DNA of 64,000 nucleotides, from IMG/VR virus record IMGVR_UViG_3300034104_003795, positions 62,001-126,000 of that record; one strand, 5' to 3'. The notes under the pieces were generated by a model. The model was not told where the DNA came from. It worked only from the letters and a program-made list of their open reading frames with translations, and made no database searches. A program made the position numbers and the translations under genes. How positions within the stretch are numbered: the stretch's first letter is position 1; every line of letters begins with the position of its first letter. Shown piece after piece: positions 23,215 to 62,548 of this stretch.

Positions 23215-23230
23215 ATTATTAAGTTGTTTG

Positions 23231-23311
23231 TGCCCCAAGAGAGATTCGAACTCTCACACCTCTCGATATCAGTTCCTAAAACTGATGTGTCTACCGTTCC
23301 ACCATCAGGGC
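23231..23311 (-). tRNA. tRNA-Leu(TAG)
   Basis: Cloverleaf, anticodon arm tcagt-ttTAGga-actga, long variable arm. Confidence 0.93.
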
Positions 23312-23839
23312 ATATTTTTGTAATGATTTTAAAAATAATTCAATTCCTTTGTTGTGATTAGCTTCCCAATCATCCGGATTACCGCTATCACTTACATATT
23401 TGTATGCAGTAAAATCAAATCCATAAATCTTACATACCTTTGCAATTGAGTATGCTTCCATATCACATATTACAGATGGTGTGGTTTGAAAATGGTCTTG
23501 TGTATAACATATATTATATCCCAATCCATTGAAATCAATATTACCCATCAATATTTCATTATCAAATGGTGTTTTTGTTTTATCTGCAAATGGTCTAGCG
23601 TCCATATCGTTTTGGACAAATGTTTTACACTTAAATAAACTACCAACCATAACGGCATGCCCACCCGCACTTCCGTAGTTTATAACTACTACATCTTTGG
23701 GGTCTAAATCTTTAAGAGTTTCAGTTGCTTTTATAGCCGCATTTACTTTTCCAACACCAGTATAAACAACTTTAACACCTTCCGGTGCTTTTTCCTTTGG
23801 AAACTCATTTTCTAATGCAACAAATAATATAACGTTCAT
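23291..23839 (-). CDS. mtnN: MTA/SAH nucleosidase-like phosphorylase
   Basis: TGVGKVNAA, INYGSAGG, Q.DMD, CDMEAY, KYVSD; last 21 nt run into tRNA-Leu. Confidence 0.8.
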   Translation of the reverse strand: MNVILFVALENEFPKEKAPEGVKVVYTGVGKVNAAIKATETLKDLDPKDVVVINYGSAGGHAVMVGSLFKCKTFVQNDMDARPFADKTKTPFDNEILMGNIDFNGLGYNICYTQDHFQTTPSVICDMEAYSIAKVCKIYGFDFTAYKYVSDSGNPDDWEANHNKGIELFLKSLQKYALMVER

Positions 23840-23850
23840 AACAATAAGTA

Positions 23851-24023
23851 TGCTGTTAGAGTAGGATTCGAACCATACAGGAGGAGATTCAAAAAGTAAC
23901 ATTTAGTGCTTGCAAGCTGGTGGTCAACCCCATATTACTTTTCTATTTCTTTATCCTCGCCCACGAGACGAGTGGGTGTGTTTGCCAGGTTATAACATAG
24001 ATAACCAATTTCACCATCTAACA
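23851..24023 (-). ncRNA. giant tRNA-like RNA (GTC anticodon, D-loop hairpin insertion, ~80 nt branched variable arm)
   Basis: Acceptor TGTTAGA/TCTAACA-G, D arm GTGAAATT..GGCAAACAC, anticodon arm cccac-tcGTCtc-gtggg, T loop GGTTCGAATCC. Confidence 0.75.
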
Positions 24024-24028
24024 ATTTT

Positions 24029-24115
24029 TGCGGAGAAACAGGGATTCGAACCCCAGAACCTGTTACAGTTGCCGGTTTTCAAGACCGGTGCATTCAACCA
24101 CTCTGCCATTTCTCC
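24029..24115 (-). tRNA. tRNA-Ser(TGA)
   Basis: ccggt-ctTGAaa-accgg, long variable arm. Confidence 0.93.
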
Positions 24116-24132
24116 GTTAAGTACTCTAATAA

Positions 24133-24396
24133 TTAGAATACTTTTTCTTCGCTTTTACCGTCTAAACTATTTTCGGTATCGGCATGCTTTCTTCTAGCTT
24201 CTTCTGCTTCTTTATATATTCTAACCCAAGTTAAGAATATATCTACTGGCGCTAATATCCAACACATAATCAATAGAGCCATAGAATCTAATCCAGGTGA
24301 AATACCTAATCCACCAGCCATTACATCTCTATTCCATTTTCGTATTGACATTATAACACAATAGATGAAACACATTACATAATAAGTAATAAACAT
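24133..24396 (-). CDS. small membrane protein
   Basis: Two hydrophobic segments, located between tRNAs. Confidence 0.65.
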   Translation of the reverse strand: MFITYYVMCFIYCVIMSIRKWNRDVMAGGLGISPGLDSMALLIMCWILAPVDIFLTWVRIYKEAEEARRKHADTENSLDGKSEEKVF

Positions 24397-24415
24397 AACA
24401 TTTGTTTTTAATGAG

Positions 24416-24487
24416 TTACCCGAACTGGACTCGAACCAATACGAACAGAATCAAAATCTGTGATGCTAACCATTACATCATCGGGCA
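24416..24487 (-). tRNA. tRNA-Gln(TTG)
   Basis: acaga-ttTTGat-tctgt. Confidence 0.9.
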
Positions 24488-24492
24488 ATAAT

Positions 24493-24565
24493 CTCAAGCA
24501 TTCTACTTCCCGCAGTGCGAAATTGTATCTTACTTAGCCCATCGCTAGCGGTATGGGTACTTGAG
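24493..24565 (-). ncRNA. candidate structured small RNA between tRNA-Gly and tRNA-Gln
   Basis: Closing stem CTCAAGTA/TGCTTGAG with internal CCCAT/ATGGG hairpin. Confidence 0.4.
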
Positions 24566-24623
24566 TTTTAGTAATTGAAAAACATCTATTCTTCTTGCGG
24601 CCTAATACTAACAGGCCCACTTG

Positions 24624-24696
24624 AGCGAGAGACCAGGCTCGAACTGGCCACCTGAAGCTTGGAAGGCTACCGCTCTACCAAATGAGCTACTCTCGC
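24624..24696 (-). tRNA. tRNA-Gly(TCC)
   Basis: Loop ctTCCaa; near-duplicate body of the adjacent Gly(GCC). Confidence 0.9.
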
Positions 24697-24751
24697 TAAA
24701 GAGTGTAGTGGAAGATATCATTCCTGCAGTTACTACACGTTTTATCTGCTT

Positions 24752-24827
24752 TGGAGCGGAAGACCAGGCTCGAACTGGCCACCCTGACCTTGGCAAGGTC
24801 ATGCTCTACCAAATGAGCTACTTCCGC
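24752..24827 (-). tRNA. tRNA-Gly(GCC)
   Basis: tgacc-ttGCCaa-ggtca, encoded CCA. Confidence 0.93.
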
Positions 24828-24884
24828 AATTAATAGGTGAGGCTATTACCATCATTAAGTCTTTAATGCTTTAGACACCTATTG

Positions 24885-24958
24885 TGGACCCACTTGGAAT
24901 CGAACCAAGCACCTAATGATTATGAGTCATTTGCTCTAACCGAATGAGCTATAGGTCC
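24885..24958 (-). tRNA. tRNA-Ile2(CAT, lysidine type)
   Basis: aatga-ctCATaa-tcatt, G1-C72 acceptor resembling ileX; the Ile2 versus Met assignment is inferred. Confidence 0.8.
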
Positions 24959-24962
24959 GATG

Positions 24963-25036
24963 TGGAGAAGAAGGGATTCGAACCCATGACCCCCTGCGTG
25001 CAAGGCAGGTGCTCTAGCCAACTGAGCTACTTCCCC
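24963..25036 (-). tRNA. tRNA-Ala(TGC)
   Basis: cctgc-ctTGCac-gcagg, G3.U70. Confidence 0.93.
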
Positions 25037-25047
25037 ATAAGTGAACG

Positions 25048-25133
25048 TACCGGGGATGGGATTCGAACCCACACGAGCGATTTCTGCTCAAAAGATTTTA
25101 AGTCTTTCATGTCTACCATTCCATCACCCCGGC
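25048..25133 (-). tRNA. tRNA-Leu(TAA)
   Basis: aaaga-ctTAAaa-tcttt, long variable arm. Confidence 0.93.
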
Positions 25134-25158
25134 GGCGATACTATTTTTAATAACTATA

Positions 25159-25190
25159 CAAAGATACGAATAATAATTTAATTATCCAAA
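25159..25190 (-). promoter_or_regulatory. Bacteroidota sigma-A type promoter internal to the tRNA array
   Basis: TTTG-N20-TATCTTTG. Confidence 0.75.
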
Positions 25191-25627
25191 TCCTTTTTTA
25201 TATTATATATTTTAACCCTTCTGATTTTAGTTCCACTCTCATCAGGATTAATTAATATATCAATTTTTTTTCTCCACCTCTTTGCCATCAAATCTCTGAC
25301 AGTATAAACACCATCTAATTTTCCAGCACCCTTCACTCTTACTTTTTGTCCAAACTTATACTTTCGTTTCAGGTCTCTACTAATCGCTATTACCTTTTGT
25401 TTCTTTGGATTAAGACTATCCAACTTATAACCACTTGCGGTAATTAAGGGAGTTGAATCGGTTTGGCCGGCGGATACCGTATATGTTGTAACCGTAACTA
25501 CATCATAAGGTATGTGTTTCTTTTCTATCATTATATCCGCAACTTCTTCCTCACTCATTTCGGAGTCAATCATATTATGTGGAATAAACATAATAACAGT
25601 TAAGAATAAAAGAATAACTTTTCTCAT
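25178..25627 (-). CDS. 3D domain (MltA-B/RlpA-like) cell-wall protein
   Basis: Signal peptide; VTTY..QTDSTP.ITASG, IAISRDL, FGQKV, VRD.M, IDILI. Confidence 0.85.
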   Translation of the reverse strand: MRKVILLFLTVIMFIPHNMIDSEMSEEEVADIMIEKKHIPYDVVTVTTYTVSAGQTDSTPLITASGYKLDSLNPKKQKVIAISRDLKRKYKFGQKVRVKGAGKLDGVYTVRDLMAKRWRKKIDILINPDESGTKIRRVKIYNIKKDLDN

Positions 25628-25645
25628 AACTTATTTTTTATTTAG

Positions 25646-25719
25646 TGATTCGGAAAGGATTCGAACCTTTGACCCCAAACTTAGAAGGTTTGTGCTCTAT
25701 CCAGCTGAGCTACCGAACC
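25646..25719 (-). tRNA. tRNA-Arg(TCT)
   Basis: caaac-ctTCTaa-gtttg. Confidence 0.93.
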
Positions 25720-25722
25720 ATA

Positions 25723-25821
25723 TAGTAAGAGAGATACTACGTCTAATATCTCAATGTTTCTACCGGCCGTCTATGGAATATGCGCACTGACCATAAACTA
25801 AACTTTCGTCTGCTCTTACTA
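25723..25821 (-). ncRNA. candidate multibranch small RNA between tRNA-Asp and tRNA-Arg
   Basis: 9 bp closing stem TAGTAAGAG/CTCTTACTA plus three internal hairpins. Confidence 0.45.
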
Positions 25822-25825
25822 CTTG

Positions 25826-25896
25826 CGGAAAGTACGGGAATCGAACCCGTCACATTGCCGTGACAAGGCAACATTATACCGATTAACTAACTCTCC
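25826..25896 (-). tRNA. tRNA-Asp(GTC)
   Basis: ttgcc-ttGTCac-ggcaa, G73. Confidence 0.9.
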
Positions 25897-25925
25897 AAAT
25901 TACATTATCGTTCTTTAACTAATTT

Positions 25926-26183
25926 TTATTTTTTATTGTTAGTTAATTTTTGTTCTAATTTATCCAATCTCGAATCTAATTGAGAAAAGATGTGATTTTC
26001 TAATTCATCTGCTCTACGATTAAAGTCAGTTTGATTTCTATCAACTTGACGATACAAATCTTCGCCGATGCTTTCTAATTCTTTTTCTATTTTTCTTGCC
26101 TTAACAAGCCCAATAACAGCAACTATCGACACTGCGATAACCACCACTACAGACATTCCTAAAACGAATGATAATATTTCCAT
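25926..26183 (-). CDS. membrane-anchored coiled-coil protein
   Basis: N-terminal TM helix plus ...SQLDSRLDKLE; flanked by 15 bp inverted repeat. Confidence 0.7.
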   Translation of the reverse strand: MEILSFVLGMSVVVVIAVSIVAVIGLVKARKIEKELESIGEDLYRQVDRNQTDFNRRADELENHIFSQLDSRLDKLEQKLTNNKK

Positions 26184-26220
26184 AATTTATTTCTCCTATA
26201 TGTCAAAGAACGATAATGTG

Positions 26221-26293
26221 AGCCCAAGACAAGAATCGAACTTGCGACCTACTGATTACAAATCAGTTGCTCTACCTGCTGAGCTACTCGGGC
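26221..26293 (-). tRNA. tRNA-Thr(TGT)
   Basis: actga-ttTGTaa-tcagt. Confidence 0.93.
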
Positions 26294-26297
26294 GTTT

Positions 26298-26391
26298 AGG
26301 AAAGTAGAAGATGGGTGCGTGGACATCTACTTTTATGATTGGCATTTCTAACCGATTTATGCATACTAATATGCTTATCCCAATCAACCTT
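26298..26391 (-). ncRNA. candidate structured small RNA between tRNA-Glu and tRNA-Thr
   Basis: TGATTGG/CCAATCA, GCATA/TATGC and AAAGTAG/CTACTTT stems. Confidence 0.35.
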
Positions 26392-26393
26392 TG

Positions 26394-26465
26394 TACTCTG
26401 TACGGGATTCGAACCCGTATTACATCCGTGAAAGGGATGTGACCTAACCCTTAGTCGAACAGAGC
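26394..26465 (-). tRNA. tRNA-Glu(TTC)
   Basis: catcc-ctTTCac-ggatg. Confidence 0.93.
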
Positions 26466-26483
26466 GTTAATGTTAATGTTATA

Positions 26484-26515
26484 CAAATATACGAATAATA
26501 TCTGATATAACCAAA
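26484..26515 (-). promoter_or_regulatory. Bacteroidota sigma-A type promoter internal to the tRNA array
   Basis: TTTG-N20-TATATTTG. Confidence 0.75.
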
Positions 26516-26521
26516 TCTATT

Positions 26522-26665
26522 TTAACAATAGGTTTTATATTTTTTTATACCACCTTTCAAACGTCTTATACATATCATACAAGCTCCGTTTTCTCTTATT
26601 ATTTTTCTTATTCGGTATAACTTATTACTTCGTCTATTAATTTCAAACTTATCATTTTTCATAAT
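26522..26665 (-). CDS. small basic hypothetical protein
   Basis: Start trimmed to approximately MKNDKFE to clear tRNA-Ser. Confidence 0.35.
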   Translation of the reverse strand: MMKNDKFEINRRSNKLYRIRKIIRENGACMICIRRLKGGIKKYKTYC

Positions 26666-26678
26666 GTCCAATTTAATG

Positions 26679-26767
26679 CGGAGAATGTTGGATTCGAACC
26701 AACGGTACAACTTTCATCGTACAACGGTTTAGCAAACCGGCCCCATCGTCCACTCGGGCAATTCTCC
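26679..26767 (-). tRNA. tRNA-Ser(GCT)
   Basis: Loop ttGCTaa, long variable arm. Confidence 0.9.
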
Positions 26768-26771
26768 GTTG

Positions 26772-26844
26772 GGGTGTAAGGACGGTATCGAACCGTCTTA
26801 TCTAGCTCCACAAACTAGCGCATCACCTTAATGCTTCAAACACC
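26772..26844 (-). tRNA. tRNA-His(GTG)
   Basis: ctagt-ttGTGga-gctag, G-1/C73. Confidence 0.9.
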
Positions 26845-26847
26845 ATT

Positions 26848-26919
26848 TGGTTGCGGGGCCAGGAATCGAACCTGAATATCTGGCTTATGAGACCAAACGG
26901 ATTACCTAATCTCCCCACA
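26848..26919 (-). tRNA. tRNA-Met(CAT) with shortened D arm
   Basis: TGTGGGG/CCCCGCA-A-CCA, loop ctCATaa, D arm only GATT-AGGT-AATC. Confidence 0.75.
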
Positions 26920-26927
26920 ATATCAAG

Positions 26928-26998
26928 AGGCGAGTACAAGATTCGAACTTGTGTAAAAGCTTTTGCAGAGCTCCATATAACCACTCTAACAACTCGCC
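26928..26998 (-). tRNA. tRNA-Cys(GCA)
   Basis: gagct-ctGCAaa-agctt, U73. Confidence 0.92.
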
Positions 26999-27004
26999 AT
27001 TTTG

Positions 27005-27077
27005 TAGCCCCTAAAGGATTCGAACCCATACTCCGAAGTCCGTAGCTTCGTGTGCTAATCCATTACACCAAAGAGCC
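27005..27077 (-). tRNA. tRNA-Arg(ACG)
   Basis: cgaag-ctACGga-cttcg. Confidence 0.92.
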
Positions 27078-27081
27078 ATAG

Positions 27082-27152
27082 CACCGGTGGAAGGACTCGA
27101 ACCCTCACAAACAGTTTTGGAGACTGGTATGCTACCATTACACTACACCGAT
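27082..27152 (-). tRNA. tRNA-Trp(CCA)
   Basis: Loop ctCCAaa, G73. Confidence 0.9.
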
Positions 27153-27158
27153 ATATTG

Positions 27159-27232
27159 TTGGAATAAAAAGAATCGAACTTTTAACCTTCCGCGTATCAG
27201 ACGGATGCTCTAACCAATTGAGCTATATTCCA
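27159..27232 (-). tRNA. tRNA-Ile(GAT)
   Basis: tccgt-ctGATac-gcgga. Confidence 0.9.
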
Positions 27233-27280
27233 ATTTTGCACTTCCTATTTCCCAATGCTGTGTAGTGCGAACCATATCGG

Positions 27281-27354
27281 TTGGGAATGCAGGATTCGAA
27301 CCTACGGCCTCTAGCTCCCAAAGCTAGCGCGATACCTGACTACGCTAATTCCCA
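27281..27354 (-). tRNA. tRNA-Pro(TGG)
   Basis: ctagc-ttTGGga-gctag. Confidence 0.92.
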
Positions 27355-27429
27355 ATGTGATAAGTTTCCATCCTATCGTATAATGTGTACATCATTATTT
27401 TAACTCAATATTAAGTTCGGAACTTTTTG

Positions 27430-27503
27430 TGACCCCTAATGGATTCGAACCATTGACTCCTATATTAAAAGTATAGTGCTCTAACCAACTGAGCTAAGAG
27501 GTC
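27430..27503 (-). tRNA. tRNA-Lys(TTT)
   Basis: ctata-ctTTTaa-tatag. Confidence 0.93.
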
Positions 27504-27543
27504 TGACTTTTGTCATACTTGTCACTTTCCATAGTATTTGTTT

Positions 27544-27753
27544 TTAATTGTTATCTTCTAATTCTATTTTACAATATTCGTCCAATGATATTTTATCAAA
27601 TGTTATCCATTGTCCATTTCCAAAATCTACTGCGAACTTACCATCTTCTGGTAGATACGCAGTTACTATTCCTTTACTACCCATTTCAATTTTTCCTTTT
27701 GGTGTCACCAACTCTTTTATTAATGTACCAACTCCATGATTAAAATCTGCCAT
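27544..27753 (-). CDS. small SH3/beta-barrel-like hypothetical protein
   Basis: 69 aa ORF between tRNAs. Confidence 0.65.
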   Translation of the reverse strand: MADFNHGVGTLIKELVTPKGKIEMGSKGIVTAYLPEDGKFAVDFGNGQWITFDKISLDEYCKIELEDNN

Positions 27754-27775
27754 AATTGTTTTTTTAATTGTTAAG

Positions 27776-27848
27776 TGGTAATGAGTGGTATCGAACCACT
27801 TCCTAAAGATTTTCAGTCTTTCGCTTCTACCTAGTTAGCTTCATCACC
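27776..27848 (-). tRNA. tRNA-Phe(GAA)
   Basis: aaaga-ctGAAaa-tcttt. Confidence 0.92.
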
Positions 27849-27852
27849 GGTG

Positions 27853-27934
27853 TTGGGGTAGACGGACTCGAACCGCCGAACTCAAATGAGAGCTGATTTA
27901 CAGTCAGCCGCAATTGCCACTATGCGATACCCCA
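27853..27934 (-). tRNA. tRNA-Tyr(GTA)
   Basis: gctga-ctGTAaa-tcagc, long variable arm. Confidence 0.93.
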
Positions 27935-27939
27935 ATGGC

Positions 27940-28033
27940 GTTCCATATAACTCACATTTGATAGCCCTATCGTGCTACTCACTCAATCCTACAACAGCTT
28001 TCAACTGAGAGATTGTAGGAATGTGTATGGAAC
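27940..28033 (-). ncRNA. candidate three-way-junction small RNA between tRNA-Val and tRNA-Tyr
   Basis: GTTCCATA/TATGGAAC, CACATT/AATGTG, CCTACAA/TTGTAGG, CAGTT-GAAA-GCTG. Confidence 0.45.
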
Positions 28034-28039
28034 ATGTTG

Positions 28040-28114
28040 TGGAAGTTACAGGATTCGAACCTATGACCCTCACGGTGTAAACGTGATGCTCTAAACCAAC
28101 TGAGCTAAACTTCC
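28040..28114 (-). tRNA. tRNA-Val(TAC)
   Basis: tcacg-ttTACac-cgtga. Confidence 0.93.
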
Positions 28115-28122
28115 TACTTATC

Positions 28123-28140
28123 CAATATGTCAAAGAACTT
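28123..28140 (-). promoter_or_regulatory. rrn boxA-like antitermination element
   Basis: AAGTTCTTTGACATATTG just after the first tRNA of the array; related copies at 26197-26211, 29536-29547, 30018-30029. Confidence 0.55.
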
Positions 28141-28147
28141 AATCTTG

Positions 28148-28219
28148 CGCTCCCTCTTGGATTCGAACCAAGGACCAACAGATTAACAGTCTGCTGCGCT
28201 ACCGCTGCGCCAAAGGAGC
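28148..28219 (-). tRNA. tRNA-Asn(GTT)
   Basis: gcaga-ctGTTaa-tctgt. Confidence 0.93.
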
Positions 28220-28288: not shown

Positions 28289-28450
28289 TTACCCAACATC
28301 AGTGTCCTCTAACTGCTTCGTACTAATATAATCCACCTTGCCTAAATTTAAGTTTGCCGGATTACTTAACGTACTAAACATACGAATCCCAGCCCACTCA
28401 TTTCTCAATGTAGGTTGCGAACAATTTGTATGTAGTGTTAAAGTTTTCAT
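28289..28450 (-). CDS. putative attenuator leader peptide (53 aa, all 20 amino acids)
   Basis: MKTLTLHTNCSQPTLRNEWAGIRMFSTLSNPANLNLGKVDYISTKQLEDTDVG; codons 46-49 (CAGTTAGAGG) are the exact complement of the terminator 5' arm. Confidence 0.65.
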   Translation of the reverse strand: MKTLTLHTNCSQPTLRNEWAGIRMFSTLSNPANLNLGKVDYISTKQLEDTDVG

Positions 28451-28600
28451 CACTGTTTGTTTATATAAGTATATAATAATTTTATTTTCCGAATCTTTGT
28501 TAGTTTTATCAGGCTTAAATTGGGGAACATATTGATATGCCCCCCTTTTCAAGTTGTAATAAAAATTAAGATATGAAACGAACAACTTTTCAGTTGTTAG

Positions 28601-28646
28601 TAGCTCTCTCTATTGGAATCGAACCAATATGCAACCATTGAGAAAG
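28601..28646 (-). ncRNA. tRNA-like minihelix (acceptor stem plus T arm, no anticodon arm)
   Basis: CTTTCTC/GAGAGAG stem, ATTGG-TTCGATT-CCAAT T arm, 11-nt linker containing TGG. Confidence 0.5.
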
Positions 28647-28659
28647 TAAAAACGCTGAG

Positions 28660-29520
28660 AATATACGTTGGGATAACTAGCTTTAGAAAGATTATTTTGT
28701 TTCCTTTCGTTTCCACATCCTTTTGAGATGTACCAGTCAATGCAGGTTATTATAGATTAACCACTCTTAAAGTTGTAACTTACTCACCTATTACTCCCCT
28801 TATTCAATCCTGCCGAACTGATTAAACCTTGCGGGTCTATAAGCTTTTCGTAGATATCACATTCGCCTTGCGGGCGTTTGTGGCTGGGAACAACTCCCAA
28901 CTATGTATGCACCTTTCGGTCACAACTGATGAACACTTTTGCTTTTATTTATAATTGAATAATCAAATCCGCATTTGATAAAAGTTTTGGTTCGTAGATG
29001 GATTCAGGTAGCGGTTCACCACTAGCTCTGTCCCCTTTTGAAGAACAGAATACTATACTACCCGATGCGTTATCTCAACGCCATACTTCAAGTCATCTTC
29101 ATTAATAGGGATTGGTGTCCCATATTAAAGGATAGTAACGGCACCACCCGTACACAGTCTTATCTTACGTCCTTTCGGATAGCTTGATTGTCAAGACCAC
29201 TTTGGTATTGAATCACGCAATAATAAAAAGGGATTAGCTTTCTATTTCTTACAATAATCCTATGAGTTATTCTTATCGTTCTTCCGAACTCAACTGAACA
29301 ATCTACAATTGCTCAGTCACCCAAACTCTTCTGCTACAGTGTTACCCTCACATACAAAGCCCAAATGATATCTCACTTGCCTACTCAAGCTCATAACCTT
29401 ACAGGGATATGAACCGCAAAATGCTTAACCAAACATTTCACTTTATCCTACTTTCGTAGTTTATTTAATGACCATAGGCGGCCATTTTGTACACTATATA
29501 ACACGAAGTTATTATGTGTA
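28660..29520 (-). ncRNA. large structured ncRNA, GOLLD-like (~860 nt)
   Basis: No minus-strand ORF >=60 aa in the track, higher GC, many GNRA-capped hairpins (CTAC-GAAA-GTAG, TCC-GAAA-GGA, ACC-GAAA-GGT, two GCAA loops), own promoter, next to phage tRNA cluster; family name not confirmed by a covariance search. Confidence 0.7.
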
Positions 29521-29564
29521 AATTATTTCAATAATGTAAAGAACTTTGTTATTTGATAACTTTA

Positions 29565-29596
29565 TAAAGATACGAAATCTTTTTCAAACTACCAAA
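29565..29596 (-). promoter_or_regulatory. Bacteroidota-type promoter (array unit 1; drives the GOLLD-like RNA)
   Basis: TTTGGTAGTTTGAAAAAGATTTCG-TATCTTTA. Confidence 0.8.
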
Positions 29597-29606
29597 TTTA
29601 TTTTTA

Positions 29607-29663
29607 AAGATTCTCAATTTTGTTTTCTGGTCAAACCAATCAACTACTTTATTTTTGAATCTT
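29607..29663 (-). ncRNA. candidate small RNA 1 of the promoter array
   Basis: Starts just after its promoter; ends pair (AAGATTC/GAATCTT). Confidence 0.45.
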
Positions 29664-29665
29664 CA

Positions 29666-29697
29666 TAAAGATACGATAATTTTTTCAAACTACCAAA
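29666..29697 (-). promoter_or_regulatory. Bacteroidota-type promoter (array unit 2)
   Basis: TTTG-N20-TATCTTTA. Confidence 0.8.
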
Positions 29698-29708
29698 TCT
29701 TTTTTTAA

Positions 29709-29791
29709 AAGTTATTAAGGTATCCGGCTTTATTAGGAGCTTGCGCCCCTCACACAATCGGTTTTATTATTGTTGGCTTCAACCTTAACTT
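29709..29791 (-). ncRNA. candidate small RNA 2 of the promoter array
   Basis: Closing stem AAGTTAAGG/CCTTAATAACTT; internal GGGGC-GCAA-GCTCC GNRA hairpin. Confidence 0.55.
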
Positions 29792-29794
29792 TGT

Positions 29795-29826
29795 TAAAGA
29801 TACGAAAGTTTTTTCAAACTACCAAA
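29795..29826 (-). promoter_or_regulatory. Bacteroidota-type promoter (array unit 3)
   Basis: TTTG-N20-TATCTTTA. Confidence 0.8.
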
Positions 29827-29836
29827 TCTTTTTTTA

Positions 29837-29934
29837 AATCTATTATAATGGGGTTGGGTTGTACCCTTTTCAATCTGCTTTCACACCCATCACTCCCAAA
29901 GAGCTGTCAGTATCAGATACCACTATTATAGATT
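29837..29934 (-). ncRNA. candidate small RNA 3 (co-transcribed after tRNA-fMet)
   Basis: Long closing stem AATCTATAATAGTGG/CCATTATAATAGATT. Confidence 0.5.
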
Positions 29935-29937
29935 TTG

Positions 29938-30009
29938 TTGCGAGGGATGGATTCGAACCACCGGCCTCCAGGTTATGAGCCTGGCGAGCTACCACTGCTC
30001 TACCTCACG
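29938..30009 (-). tRNA. tRNA-fMet(CAT), initiator
   Basis: C1:A72 mismatch, ccagg-ctCATaa-cctgg. Confidence 0.9.
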
Positions 30010-30030
30010 ATATTATTTTAAAGAACTTTG

Positions 30031-30062
30031 TAAAGATAGTACATTTTTTTGAAACGGCCAAA
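30031..30062 (-). promoter_or_regulatory. Bacteroidota-type promoter for tRNA-fMet
   Basis: TTTG-N20-TATCTTTA followed by a boxA-like element. Confidence 0.75.
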
Positions 30063-30093
30063 TCTTTTTTTCAAAATGTGGATAACTTTTTTA

Positions 30094-30118
30094 ATTCATT
30101 GATTATCAATGAGTTACG
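30094..30118. repeat. palindromic repeat copy
   Basis: attcattgattatcaatgagttacg. Confidence 0.7.
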
Positions 30119-30142
30119 CACATAAGAATTTATAAGTATATG

Positions 30143-30174
30143 TAAATATACAAAAAATATACGAATCCGCCAAA
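30143..30174 (-). promoter_or_regulatory. Bacteroidota-type promoter
   Basis: TTTG-N20-TATATTTA. Confidence 0.65.
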
Positions 30175-30181
30175 TTTATTT

Positions 30182-30457
30182 TTAAACTAATGCGTTCAGC
30201 TTATTAAGTACCAATTCTCTTACTGAATTAAAAAGTTCTTCCGTATCAGTTTGGAATAATGGCGCCGAACCAACCGGTCTATCACTACCGGATATTTCAG
30301 ACATTGCGTGTTCATATACAGCTCTAAATGCCATTGGGTCTTTTGTATATGCAATAGCAGAGTTATCAACTCTGGATGAATTAGTAATTGAAATTATCGT
30401 TTTTTCTTCATCATCAAAGCAGATATGGCTTTCGCCGGTTACAACATAAGTTTTCAT
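30182..30457 (-). CDS. hypothetical protein
   Basis: 91 aa ORF. Confidence 0.7.
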   Translation of the reverse strand: MKTYVVTGESHICFDDEEKTIISITNSSRVDNSAIAYTKDPMAFRAVYEHAMSEISGSDRPVGSAPLFQTDTEELFNSVRELVLNKLNALV

Positions 30458-30475
30458 AATATATTAATTAATTTT

Positions 30476-31069
30476 TTAACAATAGTATTCTACTGCATAA
30501 GTATATAAAGGTTCACCACTCCATATTGGATTTACTTCTGCATATCTTTGGTATCCAGCTGGGTCACATCCCCAATAGATGATATTTCCGCGAATCGGAC
30601 TATATACTGCTTTATAAGTAGTTTTCCAATAATTACCCCATCCAAAATGATTCCATAAGAAAGTAATTCTATCATCCATTCTAGCAGGAGCCGCAGGACC
30701 ATTAGAACCATCGCCACCATTAGATGCGTCATGCCAAGGGCCTATATTATAAAAATACCATCTCTCACTCCACTCAGCTGCACCATACACATTATATTTG
30801 TAAAGTCTGATACTGCAACTCGCTTGGCTTTCATATTTGAATATGTAAACGTATGGTCTACTTGCACTATGCGTATATCCCCACCAATGAGAAAATGCAT
30901 ATCCACTCTGCCCATTGGCAGTTGGTCTATAACTACTTGCATCATTTATACCACCATAACTACCATTTCTAGCGTCCCATATGGTAAAGTATCCACCTCT
31001 ATTGAATTCGGTATTTATATCGGATGCTGCGATTGTACCGCCTACTATATATCGTAACCTATCTGGCAT
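30476..31069 (-). CDS. putative virion/tail-associated protein
   Basis: GTIAASDINTEFNR..YAFSHWWGYTHS N-terminal motif typical of tail-fibre-associated modules; rich in Gly and aromatic residues. Confidence 0.45.
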   Translation of the reverse strand: MPDRLRYIVGGTIAASDINTEFNRGGYFTIWDARNGSYGGINDASSYRPTANGQSGYAFSHWWGYTHSASRPYVYIFKYESQASCSIRLYKYNVYGAAEWSERWYFYNIGPWHDASNGGDGSNGPAAPARMDDRITFLWNHFGWGNYWKTTYKAVYSPIRGNIIYWGCDPAGYQRYAEVNPIWSGEPLYTYAVEYYC

Positions 31070-47771: not shown

Positions 47772-47828
47772 AATTAAGGGGTTTTAATATATAATAATAA
47801 ATGTTTCTTTCTTATCAATCTTACTATG

Positions 47829-47860
47829 TAAAGATACGAAATCTTTTTGAATCTACCAAA
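47829..47860 (-). promoter_or_regulatory. Bacteroidota-type promoter
   Basis: TTTG-N20-TATCTTTA. Confidence 0.8.
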
Positions 47861-47876
47861 TTTATTTTTTGGGGTT

Positions 47877-61856: not shown

Positions 61857-62548
61857 TATTTATTTTTTAAAAAAAGACAATCACCCCACTCTTTACCAGT
61901 ATCATGATACTCTTTAAGTTCAAATCCATGTGGTTTTAAAAATTCAATCAATTGTTCTCTAGTACAAGAACCTTCAAATCTTATTTTATCCTGTGTTTCT
62001 AACATAATACAATCTAAATGCTTTAATACTTCGGTAGCTCCACTTAAAACAATCAACTCAGCACCTTCAACATCCATATTTAAGAAATTGTAAGTATTTT
62101 TATTTTCAACCAATTTATCTAATGTAATGGTTGGTACTTCAATTTCAGCAATATGTTCATACGGTACCCAAGATGAATCTCTACCCCACTCATTGATTTT
62201 AAAAATAGAATCAGTACCACCATCGTAGTTACTCAAATTAAAAGTAATAACACCATCTTCTTTATCGCTAACTGCGTAGTTATATGCTTTGTATCCTTTT
62301 AGAATTTGGGCTTCACTATCGTTAAAATAAGAATATGTAAGTGGTGAACACCAAGTAACATATCTACCGGTATTTAATGATTCGCTTAAATTGCTGAATC
62401 TAAATGGATTTGCTTCAACGAGTATCACATCTTTTATACCAGCTTTTACATAAGCTAACGTTTCACCGCCTTCATGTGCCCCAACGTGTAGAACACCATT
62501 TATTTTAATATTGTATTTTTCTAACAATTGGTTAAAATCTAACATCAT
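61856..62548 (-). CDS. FkbM family methyltransferase
   Basis: LHVGAHEG, VEANP, ITLD, MDVEGAEL.VL.GA, WGD.LF. Confidence 0.9.
   Translation of the reverse strand: MMLDFNQLLEKYNIKINGVLHVGAHEGGETLAYVKAGIKDVILVEANPFRFSNLSESLNTGRYVTWCSPLTYSYFNDSEAQILKGYKAYNYAVSDKEDGVITFNLSNYDGGTDSIFKINEWGRDSSWVPYEHIAEIEVPTITLDKLVENKNTYNFLNMDVEGAELIVLSGATEVLKHLDCIMLETQDKIRFEGSCTREQLIEFLKPHGFELKEYHDTGKEWGDCLFLKNK

Follow-up and report, generated by a model that had tools for sequence, protein, structure and literature searches.

Just ahead of its giant GOLLD RNA and tRNA cluster, a 274-kb lake phage of Bacteroidota carries five tandem copies of its standard Bacteroidota-type promoter motif, each followed by a short non-coding segment, and two of these segments are structured RNAs, conserved in other phages with covarying helices, from families that Rfam does not list. 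The window analysed is a 64,000-nt stretch (positions 62,001 to 126,000) of the IMG/VR record IMGVR_UViG_3300034104_003795, and everything described here lies on its minus strand. The locus had first drawn attention through a sequence-only reading, which described three direct repeats and a diverged fourth as promoters, each driving its own stem-closed small RNA. The repeats and the pairing segment ends it described are indeed present, although there are five promoter copies (P0–P4) rather than four. Its interpretation as a modular array of promoter-driven small RNAs is only partly supported, as laid out below. The features of the locus are collected in Table 1; related loci and other sequence matches are denoted by L-numbers.

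Table 1. Features of the locus, in minus-strand order (window coordinates; P0–P4 are promoter copies, helices of sB are named as such)
Position (strand)	Feature	Description	Support
30138..30189 (-)	P0	Diverged promoter copy; -33 TTTG at 30174-30171, -7 TATATTTA at 30150-30143; starts right after the stop codon of the 91-aa ORF 30457-30182	98-100% identical in relative L001
30094..30115 (-)	Short hairpin between P0 and P1	Arms TCATTGA / TCAATGA	In relative L007 the same block follows the stop codon of a small ORF
30026..30077 (-)	P1	Promoter copy; -33 at 30062-30059, -7 TATCTTTA at 30038-30031	Repeat and profile searches
29937..30009 (-)	tRNA-Met (CAT)	Initiator-like; C1 x A72 mismatch, but only two of the three G-C pairs that bacterial initiators have at the bottom of the anticodon stem, the third being A-U	64.7 bits
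29838..29933 (-)	sRNA3	96-nt structured RNA; 14-position closing stem, inner helix AUCUG/CAGAU, internal loop with CUGA and GUGAUGG, 3' hairpin	Homologues in about 20 viral contigs; covariation; no Rfam hit
29790..29841 (-)	P2	Promoter copy; -33 at 29826-29823, -7 at 29802-29795; expected start site at the base of the next RNA's closing stem	Repeat and profile searches
29713..29790 (-)	sB	78-nt three-way-junction RNA; helix P1 29790-29782 with 29721-29713; helix P2 four pairs (ACAA with UUGU) closing a 12-nt loop in this copy, UAAUAAAACCGA; helix P3 the variable hairpin 29749-29736 (GGGGC-GCAA-GCTCC); the loop's CCG may pair with CGG in the 3' junction	85.8 bits; covariation
29661..29712 (-)	P3	Promoter copy; -33 at 29697-29694, -7 at 29673-29666	Repeat and profile searches
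29608..29662 (-)	sA	55-nt unit; closing stem AGAUUC/GAAUCU, small apical hairpin UGGU-UUG-ACCA	Sequence conserved in 6 distinct relatives; no informative covariation
29560..29611 (-)	P4	Promoter copy nearest to GOLLD; -33 at 29596-29593, -7 at 29572-29565	51/52 identical to its counterpart in L007
29486..29559 (-)	GOLLD leader	Motif AGTTCTTTA (also found after P1); hairpin at 29520-29490 whose helices vary among relatives around a conserved internal loop	Nearly absent from the RNA libraries
28652..29485 (-)	GOLLD RNA	3' domain is the Rfam match 29065-28652; 5' end set by likeness to the published env-38 construct and by RNA coverage	306.8 bits against a cut-off of 150, model positions 1-416 of 416 (RF02032); PMC12286853, supplementary file 1

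The promoter motif and its distribution

The 32-nt core of the repeat matched at 29565-29596, 29666-29697 and 29795-29826 with 0-1 mismatch and once more at 47829-47860 with 3 mismatches, whereas shuffled sequence gave 0 matches, and repeat finding added the diverged copies at 30026-30083 and 30138-30195. The Bacteroidota housekeeping-sigma promoter consists of a -33 TTTG and a -7 TAnnTTTG separated by 19-21 nt, and its transcripts start a few bases downstream of the -7 box. All five copies fit this consensus, having TTTG, a 20-nt spacer, and then TATCTTTA or TATATTTA; the last base is A rather than G in the array copies, whereas most other genomic copies have TATATTTG. The repeat is not special to this spot. 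A profile built from it found 34 sites genome-wide at E<0.5, all on the minus, coding strand. Of the 34 sites, 29 are fully intergenic although 83% of that strand is ORF, and about 20 of the 29 sites outside the array lie 5-60 nt before an ATG ORF. The repeats are therefore promoter-like and are used genome-wide in front of genes, as the sequence-only reading had proposed for the array, although initiation at these sites is inferred from sequence alone. Also in line with that reading, the last promoter copy precedes GOLLD, and the first strong one precedes the initiator-like tRNA-Met and a small RNA.

The array is constrained, being about 98% identical to relative L001, whereas the adjacent ORF DNA is about 91% identical. 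It is also old: promoter copies match their positional counterparts in other phages (51/52, 47/52 and 45/52) better than their neighbours (43-45/52), so that recent duplication or concerted evolution of the promoters was rejected. No intrinsic terminator, that is, a G+C-rich hairpin followed by a run of T, was found after any unit; the only terminator-like site in 28400-30400 lies inside GOLLD, and the units are followed by only 3-4 T, which leaves their 3' ends undefined. The neighbouring ORFs (91, 197 and 98 aa) have no Pfam or PHROG match.

Structure, conservation and genomic context of the inter-promoter RNAs

The ends of the segments do pair, with 13 of 14 pairs for sRNA3, 8-9 bp for sB and 6-7 bp for sA, but folding energy alone is not significant for two of the three (z -0.9 for sRNA3, -2.1 for sB and -0.6 for sA). 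Comparative evidence is stronger. For sB, an alignment of 36 sequences gave 92.9% paired cells against 26-42% for slid controls, and all 9 pairs of helix P1 show double changes. In 72 distinct sequences, helix P2 is 100% paired and all 4 pairs covary, with a covariation score of 0.67 against 0.07-0.16 for controls. Blocks that were not part of the search pattern are invariant; about 30 junction and loop nucleotides are near-invariant, while the helices vary freely and helix P3 is optional. The pseudoknot between loop and 3' junction is likely, although it rests so far on one compensatory variant (L124:6668-6758). The GNRA tetraloop pointed out by the sequence-only reading is present in this copy but is not conserved, as relatives have UUCG, GCAG, GUAA or long inserts there. 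For sRNA3, 77% of cells are paired against 35-52% for controls, and the inner helix is 100% paired with 3 covarying pairs. On the other hand, sA is conserved in sequence only, and in L010 it is simply part of the GOLLD leader.

The sB family comprises about 100 model-confirmed copies in viral contigs. Searches against Rfam 15 gave nothing above noise for the three small RNAs at E up to 10 over 29400-30300, and nothing over the motif in 35 related loci at the gathering score. BLAST of the locus against GenBank phages found only GOLLD and tRNA pieces, the best in uncultured megaphage records; an sB instance of the RecA type (see below) gave no DNA match, and its RecA is at most 51% identical to that of any cultured phage. 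A host origin of sB was not supported either, since only two short contigs in Bacteroidetes MAGs carry it and none of 150 other genomes sampled from that phylum do. A second model hit in the phage genome (G000:24343-24437) lies inside a 550-aa ORF and is a false positive. Three G+C-rich pattern matches (L062, L064, L107) were not confirmed by the model, and three chance matches of the sRNA3 18-mer in coding DNA (L162, L165, L177) and one of the sA 19-mer (L048) were dropped. No description of these RNAs was found in the papers searched.

Among 118 distinct sB instances, 50 lie between two same-strand ORFs, with an ORF stop within about 80 nt upstream and an ORF start within about 80 nt downstream. 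The commonest class lies between an SSB-like gene and a RecA/UvsX-like gene, 28-31 nt before the ATG and just before an AGGAG; other downstream genes are a PD-(D/E)XK exonuclease, a DnaB-like helicase, an SPL-type radical-SAM lyase and an endonuclease. In 33 of the 118 instances, sB lies 630-1050 nt upstream of the GOLLD 3' domain, next to tmRNA and tRNA-Met. sRNA3 also occurs in other contexts.

Related loci and transcription

Related phages carry the same cassettes in different combinations. They differ by whole promoter-plus-payload units, with unit orders differing in L002, L007, L008, L010 and about 30 further loci, and lake DNA contigs hold joints that skip whole units. This agrees with the modularity suggested by the sequence-only reading. 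In most relatives, sB has no promoter copy of its own and follows tRNA-Met directly.

One exact RNA-library contig spans tRNA-Met, sRNA3, P2 and the start of sB (29774-29972, 0 differences). Depth over the array is up to 117, while the neighbouring ORF has 0, and 24 metatranscriptome runs hold words of the sRNA3–sB stretch. These data are assembled contigs that pool related strains, under-sample RNAs below 100 nt and resolve no transcription start, 3' end or discrete small transcript, and DNA carry-over cannot be fully excluded. GOLLD accumulates 100-1000 times above its flanks in lake metatranscriptomes, with depth reaching 10^3-10^4.8, a sharp drop above about 29508 and adapter-joined contig ends at 28653-28656. 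Because GOLLD abundance steps up at its own 5' boundary and not at the promoters, the proposal that stacked promoters boost its output is not shown.

Interpretation and comparison with known systems

We read the locus, with moderate confidence, as the head of the phage's stable-RNA locus, built from promoter-plus-RNA cassettes in the order P0–hairpin, P1–tRNA-Met (initiator-like) plus sRNA3, P2–sB, P3–sA and P4–leader–GOLLD, followed by an array of 25 tRNA genes. The analysis establishes that the promoter motif is the one placed before genes throughout the genome, that sRNA3 and sB are conserved RNAs with covarying helices, that the same cassettes occur in different combinations in related phages, and that GOLLD accumulates as a discrete, very abundant RNA. 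The remainder is inference: host RNA polymerase would start at each copy; for P2 and P3 the start would fall at the base of the closing stem, so that the small RNA would be a primary transcript protected by its paired ends; some polymerases would read through into the next cassette, so that downstream units receive transcription from several promoters; and the small RNAs would then act as free, folded molecules. For sB, the invariant junction and loop nucleotides most likely form a binding pocket or surface for a protein or small ligand, rather than an antisense seed, although this binding, too, is inferred.

An alternative that remains possible, though less favoured, is that sB is not a free small RNA but a cis-acting leader or intercistronic element, such as a riboswitch-type aptamer, a self-cleaving or RNase-guiding processing element, or a processive antitermination RNA acting on the transcript that carries it; in this window it would then serve the long untranslated GOLLD–tRNA transcription unit. 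Its frequent position in same-strand gaps ahead of ORFs fits a cis-acting element as well as a free RNA, its anatomy is typical of aptamers and small ribozymes, its conserved fold is supported by covariation, and in the GOLLD loci it always lies upstream of GOLLD and the tRNA array. On the other hand, in this window and in L002, L007, L008, L010, L012, L019, L024, L035 and L011/L031, sB has its own promoter copy whose expected start is at the base of helix P1, and sB is followed at once by another promoter copy, which leaves nothing obvious to regulate. Helix P1 is long (7-15 bp), no terminator follows sB here, and no alternative pairing with the ribosome-binding site was seen in the RecA-type instances. 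Known ribozyme classes in Rfam did not match, and self-cleavage of sB is purely hypothetical.

The other readings are less likely. That the small RNAs are dedicated partners or cargo of the GOLLD nanocage, or anti-defence decoys, as the sequence-only reading had suggested, is unlikely on present evidence. The instances of sB near GOLLD favour it, and the published GOLLD env-38 also lies downstream of a tRNA-Met, its authors proposing that the cage may hold tRNAs or other molecules (10.1101/2024.12.08.627333); however, most sB-family instances, several of them with long flanks, have no GOLLD detected in the stretch examined, which argues against a dedicated GOLLD partner, and no extended complementarity between sB and GOLLD was seen by eye. 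Decoy or anti-defence roles remain purely hypothetical. Plain promoter duplication, with the segments as junk whose end-pairing is chance in AT-rich DNA, is very unlikely. Although the folding energies of sRNA3 and sA and the lack of covariation in sA would fit it, it is contradicted for sRNA3 and sB by their recurrence in tens to about a hundred contigs with compensatory changes, and the array is more conserved than the adjacent coding DNA. A CRISPR-like or reverse-transcriptase-linked array, a repeat-spacer memory or a template array, can be all but dismissed. A CRISPR array has short identical repeats separated by unique, similar-sized spacers of foreign origin that differ between strains, usually beside cas genes. 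The repeat-spacer look, which the sequence-only reading had itself set aside, is superficial, because the repeats are the genome-wide promoter motif and the spacers, of 49-184 nt, are unrelated to one another and conserved across phages rather than variable inserts. Variable ncRNA arrays of structured units with unit gain and loss between close relatives are reported next to UG27 reverse transcriptases in Bacteroidota/Bacillota phages (bioRxiv 10.64898/2026.09.22.753630), but UG27 units are about 150 nt, share one fold and sit beside a reverse transcriptase with two accessory proteins, whereas here the units have different folds and are separated by promoters, and no RVT_1 match was found in the whole 274-kb genome.

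Several known systems offer partial parallels. The phage T4 tRNA gene cluster, with its two small stable RNAs (species 1 and 2, rnaC/rnaD), likewise mixes tRNA genes with extra small stable structured RNAs, expressed from host-type promoters and matured together with the tRNAs. In the present locus each small RNA has its own copy of a near-identical promoter, GOLLD and, in relatives, tmRNA are present, and the RNAs are regarded as different families. In described GOLLD loci (Rfam RF02032; Weinberg 2009; Kretsch 2025, PMC12286853), GOLLD lies next to tRNA genes, and the 5' end of the structurally solved env-38 GOLLD aligns with window 29485; the promoter-led small RNAs between tRNA-Met and GOLLD lie outside the Rfam GOLLD model. 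Stable-RNA operons such as rrn, with P1/P2, also stack strong promoters ahead of untranslated, highly expressed RNAs, but here five copies stand at 101-236 bp spacing with conserved RNA genes rather than plain spacer between them. Finally, sB shares the general anatomy of junction-plus-pseudoknot aptamers of riboswitches, small self-cleaving ribozymes, and the cis-acting antitermination RNAs put of HK022 and EAR, namely a closing helix, near-invariant junction and loop nucleotides, a loop-to-junction pairing, an optional variable stem, and a position ahead of genes in many instances, although in this window it is a stand-alone promoter-led unit for which no expression platform, ligand, cleavage site or polymerase effect is known.

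GOLLD is one of the largest bacterial non-coding RNAs and forms a 14-mer cage. This locus shows that in lake Bacteroidota phages GOLLD is embedded in a conserved, highly transcribed set of further structured RNAs, comprising tmRNA, an initiator-like tRNA and at least two uncatalogued families, which gives concrete candidates for co-expression and interaction. The array also offers a natural set of compact Bacteroidota promoters, predicted to be strong, each paired with a putatively stable RNA scaffold. The sB family is the larger prize, as it combines an almost invariant core and textbook covariation with two very different genomic contexts, and RNA motifs with these properties have often turned out to be riboswitches or ribozymes. 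One tentative hypothesis is that sB is the first-noticed member of a new, widespread class of phage RNA with a biochemical function of its own, such as a riboswitch aptamer, a self-cleaving or processing ribozyme, or an RNA that modifies RNA polymerase or the ribosome, which phages would deploy both ahead of DNA replication and repair genes and at the head of GOLLD/tRNA loci. In this view, sRNA3 would be a second such class, and the promoter-plus-RNA cassette array would be a mobile toolkit of functional RNAs that phages shuffle.

Promoter copies and the units that follow them

The locus lies in a single IMG/VR virus record of 273,997 bp, of which the window is bases 62001-126000, which CheckV rates as 100% complete and which has a G+C content of 33%. 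Nearly all genes of this phage are on the minus strand, 83% of which lies in ATG ORFs of 100 aa or more, and the DNA and RNA runs that hold the locus come from lake, river and other freshwater samples. Every feature of the array likewise reads on the minus strand, and it is this orientation that makes sense of the arrangement. The sequence-only reading had described three direct repeats and a diverged fourth, and this observation holds, although a repeat finder adds two diverged copies to the three close ones, so that there are five, named P0 to P4 in the direction of transcription. The 32-nt core of the repeat matches at the three close copies with 0-1 mismatch and once more outside the array, whereas shuffled sequence gave no matches. 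On the minus strand, each copy shows TTTG, a 20-nt spacer and then TATCTTTA (TATATTTA in P0), preceded by an A-tract, which is the Bacteroidota -33/-7 promoter pattern.

A profile built from the copies finds 34 sites in the genome at E<0.5, all on the minus strand, of which 29 are fully intergenic, and about 20 of the 29 sites outside the array lie 5-60 nt before an ATG ORF. The repeat is therefore the ordinary promoter of the phage, and the array copies, which are its best matches, form a subtype ending in TATCTTTA. The best non-array copy precedes a 401-aa ORF. In addition, two further tandem promoter pairs, 80-165 nt apart, lie outside the window (genome positions 45375/45539 and 162216/162295) and may flank other small RNAs. 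The features of the locus are collected in the following table.

Features of the promoter array and its surroundings, in window coordinates and, for the array, in the order of transcription
Feature	Position	Strand	Remark
Promoter copy P0	30138-30195	minus	Diverged copy
Small hairpin	30112-30096	minus	Follows P0
Promoter copy P1	30026-30083	minus	Diverged copy
Motif AAAGTTCTTTA	30014-30031		Follows P1
tRNA-Met (CAT)	30009-29937	minus	Begins 22 nt after the -7 box of P1
sRNA3	29933-29838	minus	Follows the tRNA
Promoter copy P2 (32-nt core)	29795-29826	minus	
sB	29790-29713	minus	Follows P2
Promoter copy P3 (32-nt core)	29666-29697	minus	
sA	29662-29608	minus	Follows P3
Promoter copy P4 (32-nt core)	29565-29596	minus	Followed by a 75-nt leader and then GOLLD
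Motif AAAGTTCTTTA	29532-29549		Follows P4
Hairpin just 5' of the GOLLD start	29490-29520	minus	
GOLLD 5' end	29485	minus	
GOLLD 3' domain (Rfam match)	29065-28652	minus	306.8 bits against a cut-off of 150
25 tRNA genes	23230-28219	minus	Downstream of GOLLD
Best non-array promoter copy	47824-47875	minus	Core match at 47829-47860

The tRNA-Met has the C1 x A72 mismatch of bacterial initiators but only two of the three diagnostic G-C pairs. Promoter-like copies also occur inside the tRNA array downstream of GOLLD (e.g., at 26530), where gaps of 200-700 nt hold small ORFs, whereas the tmRNA of the phage lies far away, at genome positions 171074-171460. The Rfam match covers the 3' domain of GOLLD only, but the 5' end can be placed because the construct of the solved GOLLD env-38 begins with sequence that aligns there (PMC12286853, supplement), and RNA coverage also collapses just upstream. 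In the hairpin just 5' of this point, the outer and inner helices differ between relatives while an internal loop (ACAUAGU on both sides) is kept, and it could be a processing site that makes the mature GOLLD 5' end. In relatives, the motif AAAGTTCTTTA precedes both tRNA-Met and GOLLD, so it may be a shared leader or processing signal.

Contigs of four freshwater metatranscriptomes give summed depths of about 10^3 to 6x10^4 over 28662-29508, against 0-186 over the leader (29509-29585), 0-117 over the array and 0 over the upstream ORF (30202-30500). GOLLD is thus among the most abundant RNAs that match this window in four lake metatranscriptomes, and its edges are sharp, with a drop of more than 100-fold above about 29508 and with adapter sequence abutting contig ends at 28653 and 28656, which matches the end of the Rfam hit. 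One contig with no differences spans 29774-29972, that is, tRNA-Met, sRNA3, P2 and the start of sB, and if this contig is RNA and not carried-over DNA, read-through across a promoter copy occurs. These are assembled contigs that pool related strains and under-sample small RNAs, and DNA carry-over is not excluded, although the zero depth over the adjacent ORF argues against it. Words of the sRNA3-sB stretch are held by 24 metatranscriptome runs, almost all from separate studies, with shares up to 0.85.

Conserved RNA units between the promoters

sB is a member of a large RNA family that is not catalogued in Rfam. An 18-nt stretch of its core occurs exactly in 43 stretches of viral contigs, and a looser pattern of three short blocks hits more than 119. 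A covariance model confirmed 99 of these, one of which was later shown to be a false positive inside an ORF, and rejected three G+C-rich chance matches. A weak hit of the model (28.9 bits) in the phage genome outside the window (C1:24343-24437) lies inside a 550-aa ORF and is a false positive, a reminder that the three short conserved blocks can occur by chance. The consensus reads, 5' to 3', the 5' strand of a closing helix P1, UGAAGCCA, a 4-bp helix P2 that closes a 12-13-nt loop containing UAAUAAAACCGA, GUG(A), an optional hairpin P3 of 0 to about 45 nt, AAAGCCGGAYA and the 3' strand of helix P1. Conservation of the blocks used as search patterns is by construction, but GUUGAAGCC and AAAGCCGGA were not in the first pattern, and UAAU and GUG were not in the second, and all four are conserved.

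The helices are supported by covariation. In 36 sequences, 92.9% of cells pair, against 26-42% when partners are slid, and all nine pairs of helix P1 show double changes, while in 72 distinct sequences of the wider set, helix P2 is 100% paired with all four pairs covarying and a covariation score of 0.67 against 0.07-0.16 for controls. CCG in the P2 loop can pair with CGG in the 3' junction, and this pairing is invariant except in one diverged intergenic copy (L124:6668-6758, in a contig that also has a canonical copy), which carries the compensatory change CCU and AGG. As this is one event only, the pseudoknot is likely but not proven. The GNRA hairpin pointed out in the sequence-only reading is P3, whose loop is UUCG, GCAG, CCAA, GUAA or a long insert in relatives, and which is absent in some, and the GNRA loop is therefore incidental. 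Lake DNA contigs carry the same three substitutions in the apex of P3 (29740, 29744 and 29745) as the close relative L001, which turn the GCAA loop and its closing pair into a 4-bp stem with a 6-nt loop. No Rfam family matches sB. The motif occurs in only two short contigs of freshwater "uncultured Bacteroidetes" MAGs among 185,579 species genomes, and the model finds nothing in 150 other genomes sampled from that phylum.

The sB family occurs in two contexts. Of 118 distinct instances, which are not independent lineages, 33 lie upstream of GOLLD, where the typical order is tmRNA, tRNA-Met, sB (6-8 nt after the tRNA), one or two promoters with another small unit, GOLLD and then a tRNA array. 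On the other hand, 50 instances lie between two same-strand ORFs, and the commonest class sits between an SSB-like gene and a RecA/UvsX-like gene, followed by an exonuclease, a DnaB-like helicase and a ribonucleotide reductase, with the motif ending 28-31 nt before the ATG. Other downstream genes include a PD-(D/E)XK nuclease, an SPL-type lyase and an endonuclease VII/HNH protein. One and the same sB variant is followed by different genes in the related contigs L076, L080, L086, L091, L092 and L152 (an HNH/endonuclease VII protein, a methylase-like protein, a helicase-like protein and small ORFs), and the site just downstream of the motif is a hotspot of gene turnover. In several loci, including this window, sB has its own promoter, placed so that transcription would start at the base of helix P1, and another promoter follows directly.

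sRNA3 is a second conserved family. An 18-mer from it occurs in 23 contigs, of which 20 are genuine, and it usually lies 8-15 nt after a tRNA or tmRNA 3' end. Overall, 77% of cells pair, against 35-52% for slid controls; the inner helix AUCNG/CNGAU is 100% paired with three covarying pairs, and the long closing stem changes in a compensatory way among subgroups. For one helix, the RNAalifold register is the right one. The internal loop carries CUGA opposite GUGAUGG, which may be kink-turn-like, by inference only. sA is the weakest of the three units. Six distinct relatives carry it almost unchanged, and only the apical hairpin varies (UGGU-UUG-ACCA, UGG-UUCG-CCA, UGGG-UUG-ACCA), so its structure remains putative. 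In the related locus L010, sA is fused to the GOLLD leader with no P4 between, and in most other relatives its slot holds a different promoter-led unit. In most related phages (e.g., L021, L016 and L025, about 100-200 nt after sB) this small unit has the core GGUGAUGAAAGAUACUCGGUAU and a closing stem AAGAUUG/CAAUCUU, while L010 and L039 carry still other units.

Modularity and age of the array

The close relative L001, whose adjacent protein is 89% identical, has the same array at about 98% identity, while the adjacent ORF DNA is about 91% identical. Other related loci differ by units: L002 has tmRNA in place of tRNA-Met and sRNA3, L007 lacks sRNA3 and has a promoter-led 62-aa membrane-protein ORF between sB and sA, and L008 and L010 differ again. 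Lake DNA contigs tile the window's version exactly and also show joints that skip whole units, for example 29830 to 29933 and 29596 to 29795, although such joints can come from relatives. Each promoter is closest to its positional counterpart in other phages (P4 51/52, P3 47/52, P2 45/52), against 43-45/52 between neighbours. The array is therefore old and each copy is maintained, and cassette exchange fits the data, but recent duplication does not.

Interpretation of the locus

The nearest analogue known to us is the T4 tRNA cluster with its two small stable RNAs, together with the tandem promoters of stable-RNA operons. The position of GOLLD next to tRNA-Met has been published, and variable ncRNA arrays exist in Bacteroidota phages, but those are reverse-transcriptase-linked and made of one repeated fold. 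What is new here is the cassette layout and, above all, the two RNA families, which are absent from Rfam 15 and from the papers searched, although that search covered open-access papers only and cannot exclude an earlier description.

The main rival reading, which is possible but only tentatively held, concerns sB alone and takes it for a cis-acting leader, meaning an aptamer, a processing element or an antitermination element. The intercistronic instances of the family fit that view, whereas its stand-alone promoter-led instances fit a free RNA better. The small RNAs had also been proposed as partners or cargo of the large RNA, and a dedicated GOLLD partnership is weakened by the many instances with no GOLLD in the stretch examined, while the decoy and anti-defence roles suggested with it remain conjecture. 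CRISPR-like and reverse-transcriptase-linked readings are excluded. Overall, the interpretation offered in the sequence-only reading, that of a modular array of promoter-driven small-RNA cassettes, is partly supported.

The analysis establishes the identity of the promoters by position and consensus, the reality of two of the RNAs, the modularity of the array and the discrete, abundant accumulation of GOLLD. Initiation at each copy, paired ends acting as protective termini, additive read-through and a trans-acting role are, on the other hand, inferences. With moderate confidence, we read the locus as the head of a stable-RNA region of the phage, built from promoter-plus-RNA cassettes.
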